Part shown: piece after piece, positions 6,438 to 33,397 of the stretch
How the letters are laid out: each line of letters opens with the position of its first letter
Numbering within the stretch: position 1 is the first letter of the stretch
From: Perkinsus chesapeaki ATCC PRA-425
Lineage: Eukaryota > Protista > Perkinsozoa
Assembly (NCBI GenBank): GCA_013115145.1
Contig: JAAPAO010000364.1
Location: forward strand, 1 to 35,952
Direction: 5' to 3'
Length of the DNA stretch: 35,952 nt
The notes under the pieces: generated by a model
What the model was told of the DNA's origin: nothing
What the model saw: the letters and a program-made list of their open reading frames with translations, nothing else
Database searches by the model: none
Program-made: the position numbers and the translations under genes

Positions 6438-9400
6438 TCATTCATCATTCGGTAACCCAAACGTCGCTGGACCTAATTCCATGTCCATGGGCTCCGTGCC
6501 GCCATTGGTTTGGGCAATATGATACCTGCAAGGGGAAACAAAGCAGTTTTGGGAACTGACTCTTCGAAGAGCAAAGCTGGTTGCCCGCTGGCATTAAGCA
6601 ATGCTTAATAAGCATTACTTCGGAGCGGCGCTATCTACGTTCGTTAATTCCGCACAGTCTTCCTGTACGTTCCACGCAAGAGCAGCAGCTATGAGTGCGG
6701 CGAAGCTACCAACGCCCAGCACTGCCGAAATGGAGCCACCTAAATCAACAAGAATCGAGGACTGAGGCAATTTCCGCTTACCTTGAAAAGCAAAGATCAG
6801 GCTAGAGATAACGCTCATGGTGATCTCCGGGTAGCACTGCGATAAGTTGAACACCGCAGTCAATCTAGCTCTGAAACAGCACCCGACGTATAACGCTGCA
6901 ATTGAGAACAGGGGCTACTCGATACCTGTGATCACGAAGGTCCGGCCTGCAGCATGTCTTTGAGACAAAAGTCCATGGTAACTGATGTGTTGCAGCCATC
7001 GGTATCCCAAAGAGGATGATGCAAAAACGGGATGCGGGAGCAGAGCCTGAGCATGTGATCATTACGGTAACAGGAATACAGTTTTTGGGCAGCCCCAAGT
7101 TATATAGTGCATCACGATCGGGTGGAGTACATGATGCTCTCCAGCAACCCAGTGGGAAGTGCTCACTCCCTTGATAACTGCTTATTAGGAACTGGGGTGC
7201 AATTTTCAAAGGTCGGCACTCAAAACTTGCGTATTCGATACGATTGAAACTCAAACTTCCTTCCCAACCGACTTGTGATTGGAAAGCAGCTTTCCGAAAG
7301 CTCCCGAGGGGAACGGTCCAGCCTCAGCTAACATTAGTAACAACGCGTTACAGAGAGTGAAACCCCAAGAGCATGTTATCATTACATCATGCTGAGAAGG
7401 AACGGCCGAGAACCCTTTCTGAGGTCTTGTCAATCAACGCGTCTGCCACTTACTAAACCACATTGACCATCTGGCAGATGGCATCTGCTTCCGGCTCGAA
7501 GCCTGGCAGTGAATTCTGATGATATCCGGCTTTAGACTTCACTGGTGATGAAGATTATATTTGTCACAACATAGTCTTCCTAGCCTTCAAATGCCTTTAA
7601 ATATTGGTTTAGCTTCAACCTCATTACTAACGAGCCAGTAGTTAAATGACCTTCTCGAATGCATTGTCGAAGCATCCGGCTGTGTCGCCCATGAAGGTGT
7701 TGGGTTGTATGAGACACCGAGGAGCGAGCACATTTGACTCATGCCTGACAATACAAGCTCCATTCTCTTTGCTGTCTCACGCATGGAGAAGCCAACGACG
7801 AGCATGCAGAAATTTGCTGGTGTATGCAACTTCCCGCAGCAATCGTCCGATCTGCCAAGACCCTGTAGTACGGGATCAAAACTGCTGAAGTCTCCGTTTT
7901 TAAGAGAGAATAAATGTCGTTAATGTATTCGAAATTGAACCGATATGAGCGGAATGCTCAAACCGTTCACCGCCTACCGTTGACACGTTTCCAGCTGGCC
8001 GGTCAATATGGCCTCAATGCTTCTTAACCGAAAACCCGGTTCTCGACAGTGGGTGTACAAGTCCTGCAGCAGGACTTGTCATGAGAAATCTTGCTGGACT
8101 TGGACGATTCGGGATTTGGGACCGATTAGATGTGGTAATACAGTGTTGGATACTATCCAATGGATAGTACAACTAGCACTCTGCTGCCAGCACGAAAACA
8201 CTGCAGGTTCCTAGCAGGCTGCTAGTAGCAGCGCCAGCAGTAAGAAATCGTGGAACGGTGGTACTCCCACCGTGGTAGTACCCCTTTTGGTACTGTACCA
8301 TTGATACATGGCATTCAGAGGGCAAAATGCTGGAACTTCAATAAGAAACATCTTCTGCACCTCAACGCAGTGATTGGCAGTCGTCTGGCCTACTCACGAG
8401 TAGTGACGCACTCAGCAAGCTCCCAACAAGAGATATCATGCACAACGACCACAGGCGAGCCAGCGAGATCTGCAATACATGACAGGAAAAGAACGCGTTG
8501 AATATTATCACAGGTTCTTACCTGGCGCTGCAAAGCTGGTAAGACTAGAGATACAATGCTGCAAAGACACGCAGACATGGCTAAACTGGCATTAGCATAT
8601 CTGACACCGTCTGCAAATAATCGCTTCTCGGAGTCCGAAGCGCCCTCCGAGTTCGAGCCACCGAAAATGACCAAGCCAACCCATTCGGTAGTGTACATGT
8701 AAATAGCGAACCATGCAAGATAGCTGAATGATTGAGCCGCGAAAGCGATCCGTATGGATCGCGGCATGACCCGAACCTAAATCGCGTAGCTTCGTCGATC
8801 GTCAGCAACTTCGTTGAGCAACGATCTCGATCGTAATGAATATGTGCATATACGTTTAATAACAAAACTATATTGGATATAAAATGACAGGCGAATGTGT
8901 TACACATTCGCAGATTATACAGTATCACTGTCTGTAAGTAAAAGACTTCTACTAGAAGTTTCCGGCTAACAAAGTGCCCCTCATCTCACCCCATCGCAGG
9001 CTTCCTTGAGAAACCTCTTCCCGCAATTCTCAGACGATATAGATGACACTTCCTTGCCCACGGCGTTAGACGTCGTCGAGTCCTCCGGGACGCAGCAGAC
9101 TGCAAGCGAACCAGAAATGATGACGTAGATGGAGGTGAAGGCGAAGACGGCGGAAACTTCGGAAGTGAAGGAGTTGCTAGAATCTGAAAATTACACAAAG
9201 CCGAGGTTTTCGGAATGTTCCGGTCGGATCGATAGAACCGATTTACTTGCAAAGTCGATTCCCCCGATAAAATAGCCTAATGCCGTACTGAGCCCAGCCG
9301 TCACACTAAGAGCTGCATTAGCCCGTGCCTGGAATGACACGGGGGGAAAGAAAGCAGGAACGTGCTAGAATACCTGAAGTGGCTCTGGAACGGTATCGAC

Positions 9401-10064
9401 CAATAAAGCGCGGAGTGGACCCTGATAGGCGTTGATAGAAATATCCAAAAACCAGAATGATATGGCAGCAGACAATGACGAAGTCGCATTGGAGAAGGCG
9501 AGCAAACCCGAGACCATACCAAACAGACCTGAAAGAGCATTCATTATTACTCGGTATTACCAACAATCCTTACCAGCGATGAGGAAAGGTTTACGCCTCC
9601 GCCCTATTCGATCGGAAAGCACACCGACAATGGGCTGAACGAGCATACCAGAAAACGGTCCTGCGAGCCAGGTGAGGGAAACCTATCAACTGCAGCTATT
9701 CCAGACAACATACATCCTACAATTTCTCTGGGGCGAAGATAACAGACGTTTCTGATTGCGAATCAAAATGCACTATCAGTCAGGTTATCGAGCTTCGACG
9801 CAGATGGAACACAGTTGCCGCACTGGCCTGTTGTAGAGCAGCTCAGCCACCTTTAGTGTGGCACAGGAAATGAACGTACAAGATTATAGTCTCGCTCTCC
9901 GCAGCCAGAAGAGAAACCCCCATACAGTCGCAACCACCCACCATTGTGTTAGACATGCCTAAGCCCTTTAAGGTAGGAGTGCTGTACCCTATCTGGACCG
10001 CCCAACTTATCATACAGCAAGACCATGATAAAGATAAAAGTAATATTACCAACCACGAATGCAT
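6438..10064 (-). CDS. Sucrose/H+ symporter-like MFS transporter (SUT/SLC45, GPH family), many exons
   Basis: Family motifs occur in the expected order: SWAVQIGYSTPTLKGLG; GPFSGMLVQPIVGVLSDRIGRRRKPFLIAG; FSYLAWFAIYMYTTEWVG...FADGVRYANASL; IILFGIPMAATHQLPWTFVS; TAVFNLSQCYPEI. A phase-2 intron (~6526-6618) adds a last exon YHIAQ..LPNDE* ending at 6438. The start codon is uncertain. Confidence 0.85.
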
Positions 10065-10383
10065 GGAAAGGGAACGCTGCAATCAGGCTCTCTTGAAAAG
10101 GGGACACAACACAACAGACGCTACCATAACCAACACTCATCACGCAATTATAGAATCGCCGCCAATGAGCAGCAGCAGCAGCAAACGGCGGACAAGAACA
10201 GTGAAGAGGAACACCTGATGGGCCTCCTAAGAGCGAATTAAAAAGGTATCAAGCGGTATCGGACGACCGAGAACAAATCTGCACGCGCCGTAAAGATGCG
10301 GTTGTGCGATGGTGGTGGTGGTGCAGCACGACACAGAACAAAAGATATGTTACACAATGCAACACTGAAACATTATATTCTCA

Positions 10384-12400
10384 TCAGACTGGTGGCTCCA
10401 ACGCCGCTGATACTGAAGCAGTCGGTTGGACCACTTCCAGCACGAATTCAACGCGGTTGTTTTTCGTCGAAATATCGTCATCCTGATTTTCGGAAACTGA
10501 GTCCTCGCCCGACTCCTCGAAGACATCTCCCATTAGTCGATGCCTAACCTTGTGCAGAAGCTTTGTGAGAAGATGAATGCTGAAACCTAAGGGGACTCGG
10601 AATTAGAATAATTATTGTTATTGTTGAGGTCGTCGCCTTACATCCAAGAAATGCAGCAAAACCATAACGTCCTCCAATGTCACCTGTCCACCACCAAATA
10701 GATATTAATAATATACCACTCCAAATACCAGTAATAAATATTGATATTATATCCGATAATATTGGCTTATTATTAATAGATATTAATGAATATGAACCAG
10801 GTGATGCAGCTGGACCACTCATACCTAATAATAATTATAATAATAATAACTAACAACAACAACCATTACCAACAAATGAACCTGTCCAAATGAACAACAT
10901 CAACGGGTTCGTGCTCGGCGGTAAAAACAATCCCGCTGCTAACGACACCATAGCAGAGGCAACCACTGGAGAGAAATGAGGGTTGAAATAGAGATGGAGC
11001 CAAAGCGTGACAGCCTAAAGAAACGATCCACAAAACACGCTTCTCCATGCAAAAGCTACACTTGCAACCGCGCACGCAACAACAAAGCTTATCGTCACCA
11101 TTGTCGAGATGAGGACGTTGCCATCCGCGTAGGAGTGAAACCATCGGTCTGTCCTGAAACAGATGATGGGAAGCTGGTGAGCTTTCATCGCCTACCAAGA
11201 TTGGAATGCATCGTCAGGGTCAAGACTTGTGGAGGTCCAAGTGCCGGACTGAACTAGGACTATAAATAGTGCGCTGATGTGACCAGCGACATAGGCCATC
11301 ATACCTGTGGAGGGATGCTAATGAGTAAGGGGCTGGACGGACTCATACCGAGTTTTCCTCCGATACCATGCAGCACATGGCGAAGGGAAAATGTGACGCA
11401 GATGAAAACAAAACACACGAAAGGCTCCCATTGGAGAGTGAAGGCCTGAGTAGCAGCAGTCATATAATGGGCTTCCTCTGCTGAGCTTTAAGATTCTCTC
11501 GGCGACTCATCATCGATAAAACATTCTTAGCTGGGAATGCAGAAACCGGAAATGCGGCCTTCCCTCGCCAACACTTAGGCAAACGAATGTTCTATGAATC
11601 GACACTTTTTCAAAGTATTCCAACACTGCCTAACCTACATCATTCGTCGAAGCCGAGACAAAACTGGCTCCATAGGCAGTCTCTCGATAGGGCGATGACA
11701 AGGTCAAACCAGCTAGGATCTGACGTATGCGTACGAAAGTACAAAGATTGAAACGAGCTCACTCCGATGACGCTTGCTGATGCAACACCGTTAATGCCAT
11801 AGATGTCTTGGGCGACGTATTTGGCCAAGAGGAGGGATGCTAGTGAGACACAGTAGCCGATGAGAACGGTTAATAGAGAGCGTAGGATTCTGGATAGGAC
11901 ATGCTTGTATCGCGAAGGGCAAGAGGAAACAAACCGCATCAACTACATGTATAAGATGTTTGATAGGAAATATGTTACTAGTGATACAGAGAAGGAGATA
12001 TAATAGAAAGGAGTTTGATAGGAGATATGTTACTAGTGATACGGAGGAGGAGATATAATAGAAAGGAGTTTGATAGGAGATATGTTACTAGTGATACGGA
12101 GGAGGAGATATAATAGAAAGGAATTTGATAGGAAATATGTTACTAGTGATACAGATGAGGAGATATAATAGAAAGGAGTTTGATAGGGAATATGTTAGTA
12201 GTGATACGGAGAAGGAGATATCATAGAAGAGTTTGATAGGAAATATGTTACTAGTGCAGATCTATATGCCTGCTTGAAAGATACGGCCCACAGGAACGGA
12301 ACAGAACAAATCTATATCGCGTCACTCGATGCTCGTCTATGATTCTCTCGTCACCCACATCAACGCCGAGGGAGCCTCTTCGGGAGGGACACCGGACGAC
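10384..12400 (-). CDS. Uncharacterised dual-repeat multi-pass membrane protein, paralog 1 (start uncertain)
   Basis: Spliced read: LLAKYVAQDIYGINGVASASVIG|ILAGLTLSSPYRETAYGASFVSASTN|AFTLQWEPFVCFVF..HGIGGKLG|...LPPSTNPLMLFIWTGSFVG|MSGPAASPG..WWTGDIGGRYGFAAFLG|..FSIHLLTKLL..EPPV* (stop 10384-10386). Confidence 0.8.
11958..12256. repeat. 55-bp minisatellite, ~5.5 copies, probably intronic in paralog 1
   Basis: Unit gtttgatagg(a/g)aatatgttactagtgatac(a/g)gagRaggagatataatagaaagga starts at 11958, 12013, 12068, 12123, 12178 and 12231. Units are diverged at several positions, with one 2-nt deletion. Confidence 0.95.
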
Positions 12401-12578
12401 ACAAGTGTTACAACAACTCAACAGCAAAGGCTTGAAGTAGAAAACCCATTACCCGAAAATACGATGACTAGCGTAAGCTAAATAACAGTGGGAAACATGG
12501 ACATAAGCCCCTCCCAGAAGGGTAGCGATCTACAGAAGGCATTCTCTTAGAGAATATATCAAATATATACGTCATCAG

Positions 12579-14896
12579 TTATACAACACTCGAGTCATCT
12601 TCAGAAACATCTTCTTTTTCGACCGACTTCATTCGACTATTGAAATTCTGTACACATTTTGTGAACAGATGGACGGTGAAACCTAAGGGGACTCGGAATT
12701 AGAATTATTATTGTTATTGTTGAGGTCGTCGCCTTACATCCAAGAAATGCAGCAAAACCATAACGTCCTCCAATGTCACCTGTCCACCACCAAATAGATA
12801 TTAATAATATACCACTCCAAATACCAGTAATAAATATTGATATTATATCCGATAATATTGGCTTATTATTAATAGATATTAATGAATATGAACCAGGTGA
12901 TGCAGCTGGACCACTCATACCTAATAATAATTATAATAATAATAACTAACAACAACAACAACCATTACCAACAAATGAACCTGTCCAAATGAACAACATC
13001 AACGGGTTCGTGCTGGGCGGTAAAAACACGCTCGCTGCCAAACTGACAACCGATGACGCCGTTACAGGATTGGCAGAGTGATGAACATGAAACCACAATG
13101 TGAAGGACTAAGGACAGCAAAATCGCGACATTTCGTGGCGAGTGACGCACCGCTGAGAGTCCACAAGCAGTGATCATGCCGATAGAACTCAGCATTGACA
13201 GCAGTAGAGAATCATATCGAAATAACCAGATTCCAGTCCTGAGCACAAGTAACTGCATGTCGGGGCATTCACTCTTACCAATTAGTGATGCCATATTCAG
13301 GATTGAGTGTTGCGGTGTCCCATGTAGCTTGACCGAATAGGACCAAAATGACCGCCGATAGATGACCAGCGAGATAGGCAGTTGCGCCTGTTAGAGCACA
13401 CGGTGGTCAATTGATATGGGGAAATCGGAGCTACCTAATTTGCCACCGATCCCTAGAAAAAATGGCCGGAAGGCGAAACTAAGGATGACGAAAAGGAGGG
13501 CTATGAAACCTTCCCAACGAAGAGTGAACGCCTGAACAATGCCATACCGACACTTCCACAACTAGTCTTACTTTGCTGGATGATGAAGCGATGAACCCAG
13601 CACCTAGCGAGAACTCCCTGTATGGCGAGGGGAGCAAGCTTCCTGCTATAACCTAACACAAGTGGCAGCTTTCAGCTGCACCAGCTCGGAAACCTCCAAA
13701 CCCAATCGCAAAATTATGCAGTCATAAATAGACTAACGCAGAGGATACGCTTATCGTTGGACTGTGATCTCCCTGGGGACTGCTCCACTGGACCGTGGCT
13801 AATAGGAATACAAATTGGCAGAGGAGTCTTTGTTATGTGGGATATAATACGAATGGATATGGAGTATATGGCCCTGTTAAATCCGATTTAAAAAATATAT
13901 TAAACGAGGAGGGAGAACGAAACACGAAATCTGATAACAACTGATGGTCCCAGCGGCTTATGCACAAAGATTCAAGCCTTCAAGCTTAAATTCCTGTCCT
14001 GCACAAATAGATCATATTAGAAGGAAACGCTAACCGAGTGAAAGCCTGGAGACATAAATGACAACCCTGCTGGCTGCTTCAGAGAATAACTTATTCGGGC
14101 GAGACGAATGTTCCAAAGCCTCGGCAAAACCGAATAACATATGACAAACTGAGGCAAGTCACGGTAAATCCAAAACGGACACCGAGCGGCGGCAATACAC
14201 TAATAAAACTACACCAGGGCTGCTTGCAACGAATTAGCCCACTGCCCACTCGATAGTCGTACAACGGCATGGAGAGCCGTTGAAAACACATACGGCGATC
14301 TTATCAACAGAGCAGTGACCGCCTGCGCGCTCAGAGCATCCTCCCACCGTTCTCAAACCAACCCGATATTACCCCTACGACGCTTGATGCGGTCATGCCG
14401 GTGACATTATTAACGTCACGCGCTATATATTTAGCCAAAAGCTGTGATGACAGTGTAACGGTGTAGGCCAGAAGGAAGTCCTTGAGGAGGGGAAGGAATT
14501 GAACGAACAGGAGAGTAGCAATTCTGGAGGATTGTGCTTCATTATTTGTACGCATCTGTCAGCGAAAAAAACTGTGAACAGGCCTGGCTTGTTAACGTTG
14601 AAACTCAAGATTCTTATTATTAAGACACATGTTGGCTGCATTCCCCATGGACAGGATGATGCTCTCCACCACCACCACACGGTAGGCTCTGCCGCCGTTC
14701 CAGGGTGATACCAGCAAATGCTGCAATGACGCCACCAAGCAGAGTGATGCCTTTTGGCAGGGATATCTGATGGAGGAATCACTCATCAGTATAATATTAT
14801 TACCTCATTAATTATAGCATAGCCGAAAGATGCCACCCAGATGCCCACAATGACGAATAGCGCTGCTGCAGATAAAACCAATAAACGGTAGGCCAA
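12579..14896 (-). CDS. Uncharacterised dual-repeat multi-pass membrane protein, paralog 2, with extra N-terminal TM exons (may extend to ~15650)
   Basis: LLAKYIARDVNNVTGMTASSVVG|(720-nt intron 13653-14372)|VIAGSLLPSPYREFSLGAGFIASSSSK|AFTLRWEGF..FLGIGGKLG|..NPVTASSVVSLAASVFLPPSTNPLMLFIWTGSFVG|MSGP..GDIGGRYG|..FTVHLFTK..DDSSVV* (stop 12579-12581). Phase-0 exons 14804-14896 and 14629-14766 splice in frame onto 14555. Confidence 0.75.
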
Positions 14897-15769
14897 CTAA
14901 GGGAAGTTGCATTATCGCCTCTTGCCTGTTGGGTACCCTTTTTTGCCGTTTCAAAGTCTTCCTGGCTTGCCTTTCACGCTGAAGCTCCAGAAGGCATCTT
15001 GTTAGGAGAGCTGGATCGACGCCGTTCTTCGCCTAGAAAAGATACTTCTACACATCAGCAATGCGGGGTGGTGTTGATATGGAATTCAATCCAAAACAAA
15101 TACAGACGGATCGAATGACAAGGCTTGAAGATATCAACTATTGTAATACCGGTTATCTGCCCGAAGGAGGATCACCTACCGTAAAGTCCTCCTCCTCCTC
15201 AAGAGAGTACTTCAAGCACCTAAACCCGAGCTGTAGCTTCAGACAACAGCGTCGCTACTTCTCATCTCCAGCAGGGAACTGGGTGTATATATCGGCTGTC
15301 ATGGAAGCAATAAGTATTAGCTGAAATCATCGCCTACAGATCTTAGCGGAAAAAATTCAGACATTTCACGGAATTTCTGGCATCCTCCAGCGAGTATCCC
15401 AACCGAGGATGCCCAAAAAATGCCAACACTGCCTAAAACGGCTCCTGAATTAATGGCGAGAACTCTACAAAGGAAACACTTTGCTGGAAATGACAACGGG
15501 AACTGTCGAAACCGAACAATGATCGGTGGGGTTATCAATTAACAGCAATTGTAGAATCGTTGTAAAGTTATATAGACGATAGGAACATATATACCAGCAG
15601 TAACGACATCACCCCACAGCACCGAGCACACCAGGAGCGGCTTCGGTGATCTGTATAGTGATGATAACCATATTAAGTAACGTACACGAAGAACTATACA
15701 CTAGCTGTAGAAGCATGAAGAAATAATAAGCGACTAAATGCAGCAGCAGCAAAGGCCTGGAATGGCTAC

Positions 15770-17505
15770 TTAGAGATAGGCCTGCATTTCAGACACCGAG
15801 CGTCGTGATGTGTGAATGCTATCCATTTCCACTGCATTTCTGTAACGTGGCATCTGGAGCGTCTCGATAACCACGCCGCTTTCATTATCGTCATTGGCTT
15901 CCTCTTCTGGTTCGGCAATAGCATTTGGCGCATCAACAGAATCCTCACCAAACACGCCTGCTGCGGAATCTCTACTTTGCACCGACGAGAGTTCATCGTC
16001 AGATCCGCGATGACTGTCATTTTCCGGATCAGGTTCGTCGCCAGAGGCGCCCTTAAACCCTTCGGAGACCTCATCATCTGGTTCGCTCTTCACTGCCTTC
16101 ATTTCGAATGCAGACACAATATCATCAGTACTACTGCTGTCAATCTTCTTCTTGCTCAGACCATTATCCTCCAGAGCTGCCTTAAGCTCCCTCCTCTCAT
16201 TGCGCCATTTCGTGAACAAATGCATCGGCAAGCCTGATTGGGAATAATAATCAACTGTTTGGGCATGGAGACTTACATGCACAGTGGGCGATGAATCCGA
16301 ATTTCCCACCGATACCAGGTGATGTCCACCAGATACCAATCTGGATTAAACCAGCAATGACGCCAGTGATGAATATCGATACCATATCAGAGTAAACCTG
16401 CGGTTTATTATCAAAATGCACGAGAGCGTAAGCGCCGGGTTTGGCAGCTGGAGCGCTCATACCTGAGTAGGACAATAGAGTTCTAGATTTATACGGTTAT
16501 GACTAATATTACCAACAAACGAACCAGTCCATATGAAGAAGTTGAGGGGATTCGTTGAAGGTGGTAGATACAAACCAGCTGCCAGTGATACTATAGATGA
16601 TGCCACCACTGGGTTGGAGTTCTTATCGAAATGAACATGCAACCACAAAGTTACACACTAAAAAATAAACAACTTTATTAATAGCATCCTAACACTCCGC
16701 TTACCCCGGCTAACGCGCATGCCAAGACGAATGCTATGTCGACGAATACGTTAGTAACAATACTTCCGTTGTTGAAGCGATAAAACCAAAAGTTGACCCT
16801 AAAGCAGGGAAATAAATGACCGATTCCAAGTCTAGTTGGGGGCAGTACCAAGTGCCGAACCTAGCTGTTGGATCCAAGCATGTGGTCTCCCAAGTACCTC
16901 CTTGGAAGGCGACAATAAATAATGCACTAATATGACCAGCAACGAACACAGTCATACCTGAGATGGATGCATGGTGGGTTGGAAGAGGCAATGGGCTTCT
17001 TACCTAGCTTGCCACCTAGGCCGTTGAGAATGGGACGGAAGGCGTTATTAACGGTAATGAAGACAAAGCAGACCCATGCCTCCCATTGTATAGTGAAAGC
17101 CTGAGGATGACGGTGGCGGTGGAATTGGGTAAATATATCTTACAGCATTGGTAGAACATGATGTGAAACCTCCACCATATGCAAACTCTCTATATGGGGA
17201 CGGTAAAGTGAGACCAGCAAGTAACTGAATATATAATATATTATAATAAATATTATTATTATTACACCAACAACACTTGCTGATGCTACACCATTAATAT
17301 GGTATACACCTCTTGCTACATATTTAGCAAGTAATTCATATGGGAATGTTATTAACCAACCAAGGACTTCTTTTGTGATAAAATCAGCAATAAAGTCATA
17401 AGTAGGTGATGGTTTCTTCCCTTCTCTACGAAATAACTTAAAGAGGAATATATTAAATATCCTCTCAGCTTCCTCCATTGAGAACCATATACCGTCGTAA
17501 GCCAT
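15770..17505 (-). CDS. Uncharacterised dual-repeat multi-pass membrane protein, paralog 3, with acidic C-terminal tail
   Basis: MAYDGIWFSMEE..LLAKYVARGVYHINGVASASVVG|LLAGLTLPSPYREFAYGGGFTSCSTNA|AFTIQWEAW..NGLGGKLG|MTVFVAGHISA..|FWFYRFNNGSIVTNVFVDIAF..|PVVASSIVSLAAGLYLPPSTNPLNFFIWTGSFVG|MSAPAAKPG..SPGIGGKFGFIAH..tail..RRSVSEMQAYL*. All joins use GT-AG introns. Confidence 0.85.
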
Positions 17506-17914
17506 ATTTATATAGTATGCCCCAAAGGGTAGTGAAACTAAAAAATCAAAGTAATAATTGACAACCAAAGTGACACAAAATAATAATCGTCCGTGGCTAA
17601 TCACCATTTGCTTAACCTGGAATACTCTAGAAAACCCGCCTCTGGCTGCAACGGACAGCCAATCCGACGAATTATTCATCTCTCTGGACGTCATACACCT
17701 TCACGCGCCTCGTAATTATATCGCCCGCCTTGTGCGGTGCACCGCTCGGCGCAAAAGCGTGTTACGAGACGAAGTTGTGGCCAACAGTCACGACCCATGA
17801 AAAACATCTCGAACCGTTTATAATGGAACAGCTTCTATGCTATTATTGTGTTCGTATTGAAGTATTCTTGCCGCAGGACTCCTGCGTATCTTCGAGCTAA
17901 ACAGCGTCGCGTTA

Positions 17915-20495
17915 GTGACAAAAGTGCTGTCACACGTTAGACGTGGACAGCAGTGCTGTCACAGCACCAATCTCTCGGATGATCGTCGAGTCATAACTTA
18001 TCAGAGATTTCGTCACGAAATTTTCGTGCTGTCTCCTTCGGAAGGGGGCCTTATCACACTCCCGTACCATGGGTTTTTACGATGACACTCTGAGTCAGCG
18101 CCACTGACACTTCGACGGCCAGATGCATCGCATGCTGCCCGAATCTGCAACTACGATTCGTTTTTTGTTTTCGGAAAGCAAAAACTCGTCGAATAGACTC
18201 ACAAAGTGAGTCTCACATAGAGGCCGACCTCTCGTCCATACTCTCAGACTCTGAGACTCAGTGTTACTCATAGCCGATTTGTCCTTTGACTGTCAAACTT
18301 TGACAAAGTTTGACATTGCTGACGACGCTTCCAGTGGAGATGATAAAGGTAATCGACTATCCTCCGGTCAACCCATTCGGTTGACCGTGGGTGACACTGT
18401 CACCCATCCCGAACAGGGCATGGGGCCCATGCCATGGGCCAAACATTCTCCGAGACGGTGGCTAATCCGTCATGTACCTTATAGTCTCGAATAGCTAAGC
18501 AGGCTTAAAGCAGCTGCCAAGTTGGCAGTGCCAACATCCATGCCCGAGGCTTGGACCTCAAGGTCCTTGAGGTCCTTGAGTCAAGGACTCCTTGACGAGG
18601 AGTAAGCGAGCTCGGAAGACCCGTAATGATAGAGAGCAAAAGTTTGGGAAGGAGAGAAAAAAGTTTGGGCCGGCGCGGAACAAAAGATTTGGTCGCCCAG
18701 TGGGCGCCGCCAACCTGGCGGTGTCAAGAGTCATGTCGCATGAGTCTCTGACTCTGCCGAATCGTATTGATAGGTCTCTGAGATAGAGACCTCTCTATAC
18801 ATTTCGGCATTAGCCTGGGACCTGTACACAACCACGTTGAGGCTTTCGCAAGCACAATTACTCGAAGGAACAGAGAGGTGGGCCACCTCAGGTGGCTTTC
18901 TCTCGATGAGAATCTCACCACAAAATGTGTATAATGCTATGAGATGGTTCCAAGAGCGACGCGATATTCCCTATTATGAGGAGTCCTCATGTGATCATGA
19001 TATGTCATATGGCATTCTCATAGGATCCCTAGATGGGTGCGATTATGGCGCTGCCATATCAGATTAGCTAATAGACCCGAGGGAAACCCTGATATTTCCT
19101 ACAATCGCGAAGGCTCCCATTCCCTGAGTTGCGTGCTCGTCGTTAGTGACGATATGATGGTAAAGTACGCACACGTTTCTAAGACAATGACGACAATTAA
19201 ATGTTCAAGTTCGTACCTGACGAAGGCGTCTTTGCCATTTCCCAGAGGCGTGACGTACCCATAGGCGGAAACAAGGCATGACACAAGGCAATAGACAAGG
19301 TGGAGCAAGTCACATGCGCAAATCCAACATGGATTTCTGAAACTGTTAGTAAGTGAACAGGTCACCTGGTGACCGTCACCATGAGCAGCTCATACATTCG
19401 CTTCGGCCAACTTGGCGAGTGGAGCTCGCATGACAGTAATTTAGTGTCACTAAGGATTTCTACTCTACAGTAATGGGAAGGCTTTGCACCAAGATTGCCT
19501 GTCACAAACAGCGGACTTGAGCTTACGAACTTTGACAGTTCGACAATTCAACTGGCAGATTCAGCGCACGTGACAGTTCAGCTGGCCAGTTCCCAGTAGG
19601 CCCAAATGTGAGCTGAGCGGGCACAATCATCACAAGGCTTGACACACCCCAGGCTGAGCCATAACATAAAGGCAGGCATGAATTCTAGATCAACAACCAG
19701 GCTACTGCCGTCTTGCGTAATACGCAAATGCGTATATCTGTCGCACTTTTCGCCATGTCCAATATTATTCATCCGCCGAATTTGCTGATTGAAACTCGAG
19801 CACCATCGTCGGTTCATTTTCATTTGAAGAATAAGCGAACGACCATCATGAGCTTCCGCTGGATGTCATCGCGTTACCCGATTCATGCGGTGGACGTTTC
19901 TGACAGAAACTTCCTGTAGTACGGAAATTCTGTAACATAATGGTGCTGTATGGTAAAGATTTTATAGTGAGATCACGACCAGCGGTCGTACTGTTACAGT
20001 TGTACTGTAAGCGATCGGCTCCTCTGGGGGCTAAAAACTTGTTAGTTACGCTCTCAATAACGGTTACAGTAACCGGGTTACTGAGTAACCTGATAGGTTA
20101 AACCCATCGAGAGCTTCCATAATCGCAGGTGATGCTTTAAAAATGAGGACCCTCTAATAGTTGAAGCTTGGTTGTGGGATGCTAACACGTGTGAAACTGC
20201 TACGAGCTACAGCACAGATATTCGCGTTCTTATTTACAACACGATCATTGCCTTTCGACACATAAAAACCTGAACATTGCTCAGTGTCACTTAGTCAGCG
20301 AGCAGCTGAACGGACTGAAATTGGGATTGCGCAGTGTTTCCTCGAACCACCACAAAGACTACAGAAATATGAGTGAAACCGAGCAACCGTTCCACCTACT
20401 GTAAAGAAGCACGGACGAAACATCGGGCAACTGACACTCTATCACTGATGATCACTCCGTACCGAGTGACCGTATACCGTCCATGATGGATGATA
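17915..20495. repeat. Non-coding field of short overlapping palindromes
   Basis: About 27 perfect palindromes with 6-12 bp arms and a single central base. Examples: 18291-18315 tgtcaaactttg-a-caaagtttgaca; 18553-18575 ggacctcaagg-t-ccttgaggtcc; 18388-18406; 20061-20100 (chain of four). Confidence 0.9.
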
Positions 20496-20497
20496 GA

Positions 20498-22906
20498 TCA
20501 AAGATAGTCTCCCATCTCGGTCATCGTTCTTTTCTTCATGCCTTGCGTGGTGCCCCCGTCATCATCCCGTCGACTCAGAGTCTCGATTATAACGCCGGCT
20601 CCCTCGTCCGAATCGGGAGGGCTTACAGTTGAAGACACGGGGGTGTTTCCTTCACTTGCACAATCACAGTCCGAGTCACCGGAAGAGGCATCGCTGAAAT
20701 TTGTGCTCCGATCCTCAGGTGGAGAATCATCGTTAGTAGCAGTGTGTCTGCCGCAACCAGCAGTCTTGGTTCCAGAATTGTCGAATTCGATCTTGAACAA
20801 CCTCCTCTCATCCCGCCACTTCGTAACCAGGTGGACAGGTACACCTGAAGGCGTAACAATGTCACGGTAAGCTATCATAAGTGATATATAGCAGTCATTT
20901 GGTTACGGCTGACCGAAGAATCAGCTAGGGCGTGGAGACTTACACGCACAGTGGGCGATGAATCCGAATTTGCCACCGATACCAGGTGATGTCCACCAGA
21001 TACCAATCTGGATTAAACCAGCAATGACGCCAGTGATGAATACCGATACCATATCAGAGTAAACCTGCGGTTTATTATCAAAATGCACGAGAGCGTAAGC
21101 GCCGGGTTTGGCAGCTGGAGCGCTCATACCTGAGTAGGATACAAAAGTAAAATAAGTCTGTAATATTATCCTGGGTAATATTCCAGATTTGTATAATATC
21201 CCAGGTAATTACTAAGGCGATAATTATTACCAACGAACGAACCAGTCCAAATGAATAGACTGAGGGGATTTGTAGAAGGCGGGAGATACAAACCGGCTGG
21301 TAATGATACCAATGCTGATGCTAGCACTGGATTAGAGTTCTTATCGAAATACACATGTATCCATAAGGTAATACACTAAGAAGCGCAATACACCATAAGG
21401 TATAAGACTAAATGACATACTCGTGAACCTACACCAGCGAGCGCACATGCAAGGATGAACGCTATGTCGACGAATACGTTAGTAACAATACTCCCATTAT
21501 TGAACCGATAAAACCAGAACTCGGACCTGAACCGGTAACTTCCCCCTGCCATCACTCTTCTGATCTCTTACCATGTCTGGAAGCGCTGGGTTGGATCAAG
21601 GCTTGAGGTTTCCCATGTGGCGCACTGGAATGCTACTATTAAGAGCGCACTGATATGTCCGGCTATGTAGACGGTGAAGCCTGCAGTAGTAGGTAATGCG
21701 AGCTAGATATGGGTGTGCAAGCTGCACCTAGCTTCCCGCCTAAGCCGTTGAGGATTGGACGAAATGCGTTGTTGACAGTGACGAAGACAATACACACCAA
21801 TGCCTCCCATTTTATAGTGAATGCCTAATAAGACAAAACAGAGTGGAAACAATTAGGTGCGATAGACGAAATCGCATATACACGTGCTCGGTAATGTATG
21901 TTTCTCCGGCGAATAATATCCGGATCGCGCAGCTGAAACTGTTTCAACTACAGTGTTACACTGTTTCACACTGTGCGGATCTCGCCACACAACTCGCTAT
22001 GAAGCTAGTAAGAGAAGGAGCGTAAAAAACAATTTCCAGCCTTTTTATCCATACGTTGGTAATACCGAGTCGGTATTTATCGGGTGCTTTTGAGAACGTA
22101 CTTCCTAGAATTTCGAGGGAGTACGGTAATTCCAAGCTGGTATAACGCTGTCCACAAGACGCATATTCCAGCGACATGCCTAGCCATAAAACTGGTCGGG
22201 GGAGGGATGCCTGAGCTGTAGCCATATCAAAAAAGTTGTCAAGAAGCAGTTTTGTTTCGCAACACCATATAGACTATATTGTGCTTCGAAATCAAAAGCT
22301 TTGATTCAAAGTGCTTCTCAAGTAGCGTTCAAGTCAGTTCTACAAGTAGCTATATGATATAGACTACTGTATATCATAGTTGCTAGTCGTGTCTATGACG
22401 GGATAAGACCATCTCTCGAGCTGTTACTCCAGATGTCACTTGCATCAATGAAGGATTAGTACCGAGTCTGAATTATATTATATAAGCTATACTCAAAGAC
22501 TTCAAGTTGAAGTCTAATCATACAGCAGACCCTGGAGATCTTACAGCATTGGTAGAACATGATGTGAAACCTCCACCATATGCAAACTCTCTATATGGGG
22601 ACGGTAAAGTTAGACCAGCAAGTAACTGAATATATAATATATTATAATAAATATTATTATTATTACACCAACAACACTTGCTGATGCTACACCATTAATA
22701 TGGTATACACCTCTTGCTACATATTTAGCAAGTAATTCATATGGGGATGTTATTAACCAACCAAGGACTTCTTTTGTGATAAAATCAGCAATAAAGTCAT
22801 AAGTAGGTGATGGTTTCTTCCCTTCTCTACGGAATAACTTAAAGAGGAATATATTAAATATCCTCTCAGCTTCCTCCATTGAGAACCATATACCGTCGTA
22901 AGCCAT
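20498..22906 (-). CDS. Uncharacterised dual-repeat multi-pass membrane protein, paralog 4
   Basis: Same exon series as paralog 3, with a 720-nt intron (21825-22544) after STNA. The tail ends GVIIETL..KRTMTEMGDYL*. Confidence 0.8.
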
Positions 22907-32468: not shown

Positions 32469-33397
32469 TTAGAAAGTATCTGGGGGAGGGGTAGTTTCCT
32501 CACAGGGGGGCAATGTGGGCGACTTTTCCTTCGGAGATTCGGTAAACTCAGTCGTGGCAGTTGTTGTTGATGGGCAAGGAGAATGAGTACTGGACTCCGT
32601 AGTAGTGGTCGTAGTTGTCGCCGGCTCACTCATAGAAGTGGTTGTAGTTGTCGTCGGCTCAGTTGTAGTTGCGGTCGTAGTTGTCGTCGGCTCACTGGTA
32701 GTAGTGGTCGTAGTTGTCGTCGGCTCACTGGTAGTTGTGGTTGTAGTTGTCGTCGGCTCACTGGTAGTAGTGGTCGTAGTTGTCGTCGGCTCACTGGTAG
32801 TTGTGGTTGTAGTTGTCGTCGGCTCAGTTGTAGTTGTGGTTGTAGTTGTCGTCGGCTCACTCGTAGAAGTGGTCGTAGTTGTCGTCGGCTCACTTGTAGT
32901 TGTGGTTGTAGTTGTCGTAGGCTCACTCGTAGAAGTGGTTGTAGTTGTCGTCGGCTCAGTTGTAGTTGTGGTTGTAGTCGTCGTCGGCTCAGTTGTAGTT
33001 GTCGTCGGTTTCTTTGTAGTTGTAGTTGCACCACATGGTACAGGATAGCGTTCCGGACATTTTATAGTAGGATTTCTGAACCAGCACATCTCGGAGCTGA
33101 TGGAGGGGTCCTGCAAATAGTATCTAAGTGACAATTACGAAGCCCATTCATATAGCATCTGACTCACAGTGCATAGCAGTGCCCAGGTCCCCCAACGGCA
33201 GGCTTGCAATAAGAGAACTTGCATCCAGGAACTTGCCTACAAATGTCCTCGCAACTGTCCTGAGAGCGAAAAATTCACATCAATGGCATCAGTGGTGCAA
33301 TAGGACCCACTGTTGCTTGGGTGCTCCTTCTCAACAAGTCTTTACCAGACACCGAGTACACAAGCGATAGAGCAGTGACTACAATGAGTCGAAGCAT
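32469..33397 (-). CDS. Secreted protein: signal peptide, 8-Cys domain, Thr-rich mucin stalk
   Basis: MLRLIVVTALSLVYSVSG signal, then the spliced domain DSCEDICRQVPGCKFSYCKPAVGGPGHCYALYYLQDPSISSEMCWFRNPTIKCPERYPVPCG, then (T)nSEP repeats. No TM or GPI-like hydrophobic tail seen. Confidence 0.85.
32630..33034 (-). repeat. Coding tandem repeat, ~33-bp unit (TTTTTTTTSEP), ~11-12 copies
   Basis: Recurring gtagttgtcgtcggctca at ~33-nt spacing on the + strand. Confidence 0.95.

Follow-up and report, generated by a model that had tools for sequence, protein, structure and literature searches.

UT, Amt, RnfD and NqrB form a structural group of membrane proteins in which a five-helix repeat occurs twice, the second time inverted. 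Anion-binding proteins, CLC among them, shape their sites for anions or polar solutes from glycine-rich loops and the N-termini of helices, and the hallmark of 2HCT proteins is a GGxG motif at the vertices of their hairpins. Here we describe a gene array from Perkinsus chesapeaki, an alveolate clam parasite from a genus of pathogens of commercially important bivalves. The analysed window is a whole contig of 35,952 bp. Between positions 10384 (stop of A) and 22906 (ATG of D) it carries four intact paralogs on the minus strand, designated A to D, in which a first-pass annotation made from the sequence alone had seen a tandem array of membrane proteins with a twofold internal repeat. The encoded proteins turned out to be homologous to a large and unnamed prokaryotic family with a confidently predicted fold, whose architecture shows a weak but consistent likeness to that of Amt and UT. 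The coding sequences of the four paralogs, exon by exon, are:

11939-11763, 11719-11639, 11445-11349, 11304-11196, 11153-11060, 11014-10870, 10824-10642, 10595-10384, minus strand: paralog A, 365 aa
14555-14373, 13652-13572, 13531-13435, 13387-13279, 13238-13151, 13107-12969, 12920-12738, 12691-12579, minus strand: paralog B, 330 aa
17505-17266, 17224-17144, 17100-17004, 16957-16849, 16798-16705, 16657-16513, 16462-16277, 16233-15770, minus strand: paralog C, 471 aa
22906-22667, 22625-22545, 21824-21728, 21680-21572, 21526-21433, 21375-21231, 21129-20944, 20844-20498, minus strand: paralog D, 432 aa

These models were derived by six-frame reading and manual splicing. All four genes consist of 8 exons and 7 canonical GT-AG introns at homologous positions and phases, with an open frame, which bears out the earlier claim of four same-strand paralogs with shared intron positions. 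The two motif strings on which that claim was built are both present in spliced copy C, where repeat 1 spans exons 1-3 and repeat 2 exons 6-7. Most introns are 40-57 nt long. Longer ones are intron 2 of A (193 nt), introns 6 and 7 of D (about 100 nt) and two introns of 720 nt each, namely intron 1 of B (13653-14372) and intron 2 of D (21825-22544), which lie at differing positions and whose counterparts in the other paralogs measure 41-43 nt. The equal length of these two introns raised the possibility of copies of one inserted element, which was rejected because self-blastn detected no similarity between them or to anything else in the window. Intron 1 of B contains an additional exon in the public annotation, but no paralog supports it.

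The annotated version of D (FOL47_006526, 436 aa; P0126 in our set) is the same as our model except for the donor of intron 5 (region 21376-21444), which was set 12 nt downstream. This inserts the residues V-G-S-R, which are absent from every paralog and orthologue. In copy C, a donor for intron 4 lying 12 nt upstream would be equally in frame; it was discarded since the F-x-x-W that it removes is kept in the paralogs and the RNA joint lies at 16797/16848.

RNA contigs from public runs, which comprised four very small libraries of 2-5 million letters each, were compared with positions 12400-17800. At introns 1, 2, 4, 5, 6 and 7 of copy C, RNA joints skip 41, 43, 50, 47, 50 and 43 nt, respectively, at the modelled coordinates. 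At intron 3, loose RNA ends on both sides read into the adjoining exon. A spliced leader (reverse complement ...CCATTTTGGCTCA or ...CCATCTGGCTCA) is joined at about 17539, 34 nt 5' of the ATG. Since joints and leader agree with the model, copy C is transcribed, trans-spliced and spliced as modelled. The splicing check by RNA for which the first-pass annotation had called thus supports all seven introns of C, B being uncovered in these small libraries.

The RNA contigs also define a separate small gene on the minus strand (exons 15322-15257, 15217-15179, 15031-14937, 14896-14804 and 14766-14627), with a spliced leader of its own (at 15322) and polyadenylation at 14625. The product, about 115 aa long, contains one or two hydrophobic helices and is without a match in Pfam. 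Because this gene has its own leader and poly(A) tail, the public model FOL47_006524 (P0001, 694 aa) is a false fusion: it merges the small gene, B and A, and the public annotation is corrected here to three separate genes.

Sequence searches were carried out with annotated D (P0126), the A and B fragments of P0001 and the P. olseni orthologue P0002 as queries. Pfam and NCBIfam returned no match for single exons, P0002, P0126 or other Perkinsus proteins, and a sequence-profile search of the PDB was blank at E values up to 10; the impression that the proteins match no known transporter signature was therefore correct as far as these three resources go. Among 1.84 billion representative proteins, those matched by a profile of exon 6 were all from Perkinsus except for one, the 323-aa P0006, which bears both motif sets of the Perkinsus proteins and is matched by P0002 in BLASTP with E 3e-10. 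Comparison of a Perkinsus profile (A3) with an alignment of 80 prokaryotic sequences (A4) by hhalign gave 99.65%, E 3.7e-25, over 231 columns across both repeats. On these profile comparisons, the homology of the Perkinsus proteins to a prokaryotic family of about 330 aa can be regarded as secure, at 21-27% identity to the bacterial members.

The prokaryotic family comprises at least 254 protein clusters at E < 1e-3 and at least 517 GTDB species representatives. Its members occur in Anaerolineae (Chloroflexota), Spirochaetota, Clostridia and other Bacillota, Thermotogota, Synergistota and Atribacterota, and further in Acetothermia, Omnitrophota, Desulfobacterales and haloarchaea; many of the source species come from anoxic sediments, soda-lake sediments and digesters. 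All sources name the members hypothetical, and none has a precomputed Pfam domain. The RefSeq name is "hypothetical protein" also in the cultured Natrinema zhouii and Pseudoalteromonas sp. THAF3 (from a plasmid tblastn). A literature search for the GGKLGT motif and for horizontally acquired transporters of Perkinsus yielded nothing relevant. With P0006 and the GTDB species, an unverified remark in the first-pass annotation, that GSFVGM and GGKLG motifs occur in unannotated prokaryotic membrane proteins, has been substantiated. Despite its size, the family has no Pfam or NCBIfam model, no solved structure and no RefSeq name. It is a candidate for an orphan transport activity.

The most conserved parts of the family are glycine-rich loops and the N-termini of helices, and each repeat has one conserved lysine. 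In prokaryotic members, each repeat also has a cysteine that is nearly invariant, at corresponding positions in the two repeats. All four Perkinsus paralogs keep G171, G173, G174, K175, L176 and G177 of the repeat 1 loop and G303, G304, K/R305 and G307 of the repeat 2 loop; in A and B, residues 301, 305 and 306 are D, R and Y, respectively. The second motif of repeat 2 is present as T-G-S-F-V-G-M in all four paralogs, and the corresponding C-[GA]-S-F-x-G-M motif of repeat 1 is degenerate in them (G-[GA]-x-F-x-[SA]-[ACS]). In copy C, where helices were placed from the AlphaFold2 model of D, the repeats are:

16849..17340, minus strand: repeat 1, with helices a, b, b', c and d; contains GVASASVVGLLAGLTLPSP, the degenerate GGGFTSCS and GLGGKLG
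16190..16798, minus strand: repeat 2; contains PVVASSIVSLAAGLYLPPSTNP, TGSFVGMS and GIGGKFG; the family-invariant residues are kept

In single Perkinsus proteins the repeat signal is modest for C and D (z 7-8) and weak for A and B; profiles of repeats 1 and 2 built exclusively from Perkinsus proteins match each other with an hhalign E value of 3e-4. The prokaryotic homologues make the repeat unambiguous: their two halves match at 99.9% (E 4.4e-32), and over 106 columns the consensus identity is 39%. The Perkinsus repeat 1 profile in turn matches prokaryotic repeats 1 and 2 at 97.5% and 97.0%, and the repeat 2 profile matches them at 98.5% and 98.8%, so the twofold repeat seen at first pass is real. 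The consensus unit consists of a transmembrane helix, G-P-V-x-A-S-x-x-V-G-L-x-G-G-L-x-L-P, Y-C-[GA]-S-F-x-G-M-S, a helix, G-x-G-G-K-L-G-T and a final helix.

The family also includes complete proteins of a single repeat, 122-198 aa in length. At four loci (L006, L007, L008 and Pseudoalteromonas) a single-repeat gene is directly followed or overlapped by a second one, whose product has 125-133 aa. The presence of single genes, adjacent pairs and fused proteins in one family speaks for a functional unit of two repeats. This set of forms resembles what is seen in Fluc/CrcB-FEX and EmrE-type pairs, where single-repeat genes, adjacent pairs and fused two-repeat proteins also occur in one family; those proteins are unrelated in sequence and have a four-helix instead of a five-helix repeat (FEX Z 3.1 in the structural comparison described below). 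Split single-repeat subunits are, to our knowledge, not known for UT or Amt. Fused, paired and single-repeat forms side by side make the family a tractable system in which to study the origin of inverted-repeat channels and transporters.

The fold of the family is predicted confidently. An AlphaFold2 model of P0006, built from the 80-sequence alignment, reached a predicted local distance difference test (pLDDT) score of 93 and a predicted TM-score (pTM) of 0.91; for the core of Perkinsus D, with a combined alignment, the values were 79 and 0.78. The P0006 model has two N-terminal helices followed by two rounds of helices a (20-23 residues), b (15-19), b' (13-14), c (17-18) and d (16-18). Perkinsus D has the same five helices twice and no additional pair of N-terminal transmembrane helices. 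At 13-19 residues, all helices of a repeat except a are too short to cross the bilayer perpendicularly.

Topology was deduced from the distribution of positive charges. Among the 80 sequences, the number of lysines plus arginines per loop of repeat 1 is, in order, 1.5, 0.2, 1.25, 0.04 and 0.14, and in repeat 2 it is 0.9 for the a-b loop, 1.85 for the b'-c loop and 2.7 for the C-terminus; the separate C-half subunits of split pairs show the same bias. Since the bias alternates in this way, the N-terminus would lie inside, helix a of repeat 1 would run from inside to outside and helix a of repeat 2 from outside to inside, and the C-terminus would again lie inside. The repeats would thus be inverted, each with an odd number of crossings.

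To place the fold, the models were compared with known structures. Foldseek found no PDB chain with E < 1e-3; the lowest E values belonged to CLC proteins, with a TM-score of 0.16, and the highest TM-scores, 0.30-0.37, to urea transporters. No named fold exceeded a TM-score of 0.37 in the PDB, the Swiss-Prot models or the ESM Atlas. Clusters of the AFDB contained unnamed relatives, a few of them half-size, and two with automatic names ("HPP family protein" and "SLC26A/SulP domain"). In an exhaustive VIA-align pass over 48,161 PDB representatives, the bacterial model matched Amt1 (Z 6.2), dvUT (5.7), AmtB (5.6), UT-A/UT-B (about 5.5), Mep2 (5.2), RnfD (4.4) and NqrB (4.0). For the Perkinsus model, 12 of the 13 top matches were UT, Amt, Rh, Mep, RnfD and NqrB proteins, with Z 6.8-4.9 and up to 204 residues aligned. 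Over both models, the best matches reach Z 6.2-6.8 and align 160-200 residues. All of these values are below Z 8, the reliability line of VIA-align for helical proteins, under which a match may reflect a common helical arrangement. A protein-language-model search gave UT as the nearest named family. Because the best matches of two models built independently fall into the same structural group, the architecture appears to be Amt/UT-like, in a weak but consistent manner; we claim no membership in either family. The fold is thus confidently predicted and has no close structural neighbour, and the AlphaFold, Foldseek and Pfam checks that had been proposed at first pass brought up no confident match to a characterised family (TM-score at most 0.37, Pfam blank).

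Of the described families, UT (PF03253) and Amt/Mep/Rh, with the structurally related RnfD and NqrB subunits, are the most similar. They share the size of about 300-350 aa, two homologous five-helix halves (whose inversion we infer in the family described here) and short tilted helices. Solved UT structures are top-ranked at Z 5.4-6.8, which is below Z 8, over 157-204 residues with a root-mean-square deviation (rmsd) of 4.5-6.7 Å and Foldseek TM-scores of 0.30-0.37. PF03253 itself was found neither in P0002, P0006, P0003 and P0001 at E up to 1 nor in the 80 prokaryotic members at E up to 10. Amt/Mep/Rh proteins (PF00909) reach Z 5.0-6.2, likewise with no Pfam match, and the twin histidines of Amt have no equivalent, as the invariant and near-invariant columns of the 80-sequence alignment contain no histidine. 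The new family has motifs of its own (GPVxAS, C[GA]SFxGM and GxGGKLGT), and no sequence relationship to UT or Amt is detectable; against this group the TM-score is about 0.36 and the rmsd 4.5-6.6 Å. CLC proteins (PF00654) share with it many short helices and the inverted repeat that is predicted here, and they have the lowest Foldseek E value, about 1e-3. Their glycine-rich helix N-termini (GSGIP, GKEGP) coordinate the anion, to which the G-x-G-G-K-L-G loop before helix d is analogous. They differ in having about 18 helices and at least 450 residues, and the TM-score is 0.13-0.20, with no Pfam match in the new family.

Taken together, the architecture and the weak resemblance to Amt and UT suggest a transport function and would favour the mode of a channel over that of a carrier. 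Our preferred reading is a channel or facilitator for a small solute with an Amt/UT-like architecture, to which we assign a probability of roughly 45%. In such a protein, the two repeats would be oppositely oriented in the membrane with both termini in the cytosol, and would enclose a single pseudo-symmetric pathway for a small solute. The walls of this pathway might be formed by the short helices with their N-terminal ends (GP-V-x-A-S and S-F-x-G-M), together with both glycine-rich loops, each with its conserved lysine. As to the substrate, our best guess is a small anion, or a small polar nitrogen or C1 compound. What the first-pass annotation proposed as an expanded solute transporter family is a real, expanded and uncharacterised family of membrane proteins; solute transport by it is plausible from the architecture and from an Amt/UT likeness that is weak (Z 5-7).

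Several points weigh against a channel or facilitator. The structural resemblance is weak throughout (Z < 8, TM-score at most 0.37, Foldseek E at least 1.7e-3), and the inverted orientation and the pore are deduced from charge bias and helix lengths. The family has no characterised relative. Clustering of the flanking open reading frames (ORFs) in 80 GTDB loci, together with inspection of individual loci, revealed no conserved partner gene: the best recurrent neighbour was found at 11 of the 80 loci, all from close relatives, and the recurrent neighbours SerRS and CAP/LysM mirror only related Anaerolineaceae genomes. Paralog B has no transcript evidence, although zero coverage in four very small libraries proves nothing. 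Finally, about one third of the family-invariant residues are lost in Perkinsus, including both cysteines, the G-M pair of the repeat 1 motif and R274. Because of these particular losses, the Perkinsus proteins may have an altered specificity and a function unlike that of the bacterial ones.

Two prokaryotic gene contexts were recorded as isolated cases. On a metagenomic contig (L007, 145-8597), the split two-gene form lies inside a cluster of molybdopterin oxidoreductase, Fe-S, FdhD, MobA-like and MOSC genes, and at a second locus (L011, 1-6989) a fused gene follows CODH/ACS genes (CdhD, Prismane, RACo). They give a faint hint of C1 compounds or small anions.

A bolder version of the channel reading, which we consider somewhat doubtful, is that the proteins constitute a new superfamily of 5+5 inverted-repeat channels, remotely akin to Amt and UT, in which the single-subunit, two-gene heterodimer and fused stages have all survived and which would serve a small solute that has no known dedicated channel in anaerobes, halophiles and marine protists. 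On this view, the array of Perkinsus would represent a diversification specific to the parasite, and its selectivity would be altered, since both cysteines and the repeat 1 motif have been lost.

Among the rival explanations, a secondary active carrier working by an elevator or rocking mechanism survives best, and we consider it rather unlikely. Helices b/b' and c/d would in that case be re-entrant hairpins, with the G-x-G-G tips binding the substrate as in 2HCT/CitS, GltPh, DASS and CNT. The short helices speak for this arrangement, as do the glycine-rich loops, which resemble hairpin tips: 2HCT/CitS (PF03390), GltPh and DASS have paired inverted domains whose intramembrane loops carry glycine-rich, GGxG-like motifs at their tips. 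VIA-align does list GltPh/EAAT/ASCT (Z 4-5), INDY (4.4) and CNT (3.8), but for both models GltPh, INDY and CNT rank below UT and Amt, with Z at most 5 and rmsd values of 6-7 Å. In the models, a G-x-G-G does lie between the fourth and fifth helix of each repeat, where the GGxG hairpin tips of 2HCT lie, though in a loop of about 10 residues and not in a helical hairpin. The family protein is much smaller than these carriers, and its core of about 250 aa has no separate scaffold or oligomerisation domain of the kind found in elevator carriers, and there is no sequence match, in Pfam or otherwise, to any of these carrier families.

That the proteins are not transporters at all is unlikely as well. 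Possible roles would then be those of an enzyme embedded in the membrane, of a subunit that binds a cofactor or metal in the manner of RnfD and NqrB, or of a structural or stress membrane protein. This explanation draws on the presence of RnfD and NqrB among the structural matches, on the near-invariant cysteine of each prokaryotic repeat, which could bind a metal, and on the two loci beside molybdopterin oxidoreductase/FdhD/MobA or CODH/ACS genes. A metal site of this kind is difficult to reconcile with Perkinsus, where both cysteines are gone from all copies. There is furthermore neither a conserved partner gene nor an attached soluble or catalytic domain, and the conserved residues cluster in intramembrane loops rich in glycine and at helix ends, as is typical of permeation pathways. 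That the proteins belong, as very divergent members, to a described family (UT, Amt, CLC, HPP or SulP) is the most improbable of these structural and functional alternatives: the consistent UT/Amt likeness, the low Foldseek E values of CLC and the AFDB names of one half-size relative (HPP) and one protist relative (SLC26A/SulP) are outweighed by the blank PDB profile search, by the low TM-scores of CLC, by the automatic nature of the AFDB names, which are the sole link to HPP, and by Pfam, in which 80 full-length and 10 half-size members gave scattered chance matches at E up to 10 and none to PF03253, PF00909, PF00654, PF04982 or PF00916.

With respect to the origin of the genes, the first-pass annotation had proposed horizontal transfer. 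In a maximum-likelihood tree, the Perkinsus proteins form a single clade, whose branch is longer than 4 substitutions per site and which is not nested in any of the sampled bacterial groups, and further eukaryotic members are indicated; the proposal was thus not upheld. A recent, Perkinsus-specific acquisition from bacteria has in its favour that all close eukaryotic relatives in a search of 5.8 billion proteins are from Perkinsus, that the exon-6 profile found only Perkinsus and one bacterial-type protein, and that the prokaryotic family is large. We nevertheless judge it quite improbable. The low identity to the bacterial proteins (21-27%) and the long, unnested branch do not fit a recent event, nor do the seven spliceosomal introns per gene, the spliced-leader trans-splicing and the age of the split between A/B and C/D types, which precedes Perkinsus speciation. 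In addition, searches of the AFDB and the ESM Atlas retrieved eukaryotic clusters, mostly from diatoms, with TM-scores of 0.63-0.71. Two AFDB accessions among the results are presumably haptophyte or protist entries. On the strength of these structure and feature searches, diatom and haptophyte relatives appear to exist. The best explanation is an ancient family that is distributed among anaerobic and halophilic bacteria, haloarchaea and some marine protists.

The relationships within the array indicate an old duplication with later exchange between copies. Protein identity is 70% between C and D, 56% between A and B, and about 48-52% between the A/B and C/D types. The ratio of nonsynonymous to synonymous substitution rates is 0.34 for A-B and 0.27 for C-D, and on this basis the array is under purifying selection. 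B is the most diverged copy, with a long branch in the maximum-likelihood tree. In that tree, proteins of P. olseni are found with both types and those of P. marinus with the A/B type, so the split between the types is older than Perkinsus speciation. Orthologues of A are P0003 and P0130 in P. olseni and P0129 in P. marinus, and P. olseni also has tandem copies of the C/D type (P0127 and P0128) on one contig. Self-blastn of the window identified three patches of near identity between the diverged paralogs:

17137-17505, minus strand: conversion tract C=D, partner 22538-22906, 99.2% identical; spans exon 1, intron 1 and exon 2, with one edge exactly at the ATG
10562-10939, minus strand: conversion tract A=B, partner 12658-13038, 96.6% identical; spans part of exon 6, intron 6, exon 7 and intron 7
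16261-16472, minus strand: second C=D tract, partner 20928-21139, 98% identical; exon 7

Because such patches (96.6-99.2%) stand between otherwise diverged paralogs, we attribute them to gene conversion. The array would then have arisen by a split into A/B and C/D types before the species diverged, followed by tandem duplication, with gene conversion keeping the copies partly identical. The tracts are strongly AT-shifted at third codon positions against the rest of the same genes: the GC content at these positions is 0.33 inside the C=D tracts vs 0.49-0.51 elsewhere, and 0.27-0.31 inside the A=B tract vs 0.46-0.54 outside.

C and D end in acidic, serine-rich C-terminal tails of 100-150 residues (15770-16230 and 20498-20840). 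The tails are predicted to be cytosolic and could be regulatory. Their ends are conserved, in P. olseni too, as V-I-I-E-T-L, a basic stretch and [ST]-x-[ST]-E-M-x-x-Y-L; this motif may serve as a phosphorylation or sorting signal.

Next to A, at about 6800-10200 on the minus strand, lies a SUT/SLC45-like gene. It was identified through the P. olseni protein P0130, whose MFS part (240-717) matches Arabidopsis SUC1 (E 2.7e-25), SLC45A4 (E 2.5e-17) and PF07690, and which shares a motif around QGPLRALLVD with the ORF at 9365-9544 of the window. The adjacency to a SUT-like sugar transporter reported at first pass is therefore genuine, and the synteny is conserved, as the A-type paralog adjoins the SUT/SLC45-like MFS gene in both P. 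chesapeaki and P. olseni. An array of four genes in synteny with a sucrose-transporter-like gene suggests a role in the exchange of nutrients or ions with the host.

Two stretches of tandem repeats were also noted in the window. Repeats of about 55 nt lie between A and B at 11958-12256, and repeats of about 33 nt at 32599-33002 fall inside long ORFs of both strands.

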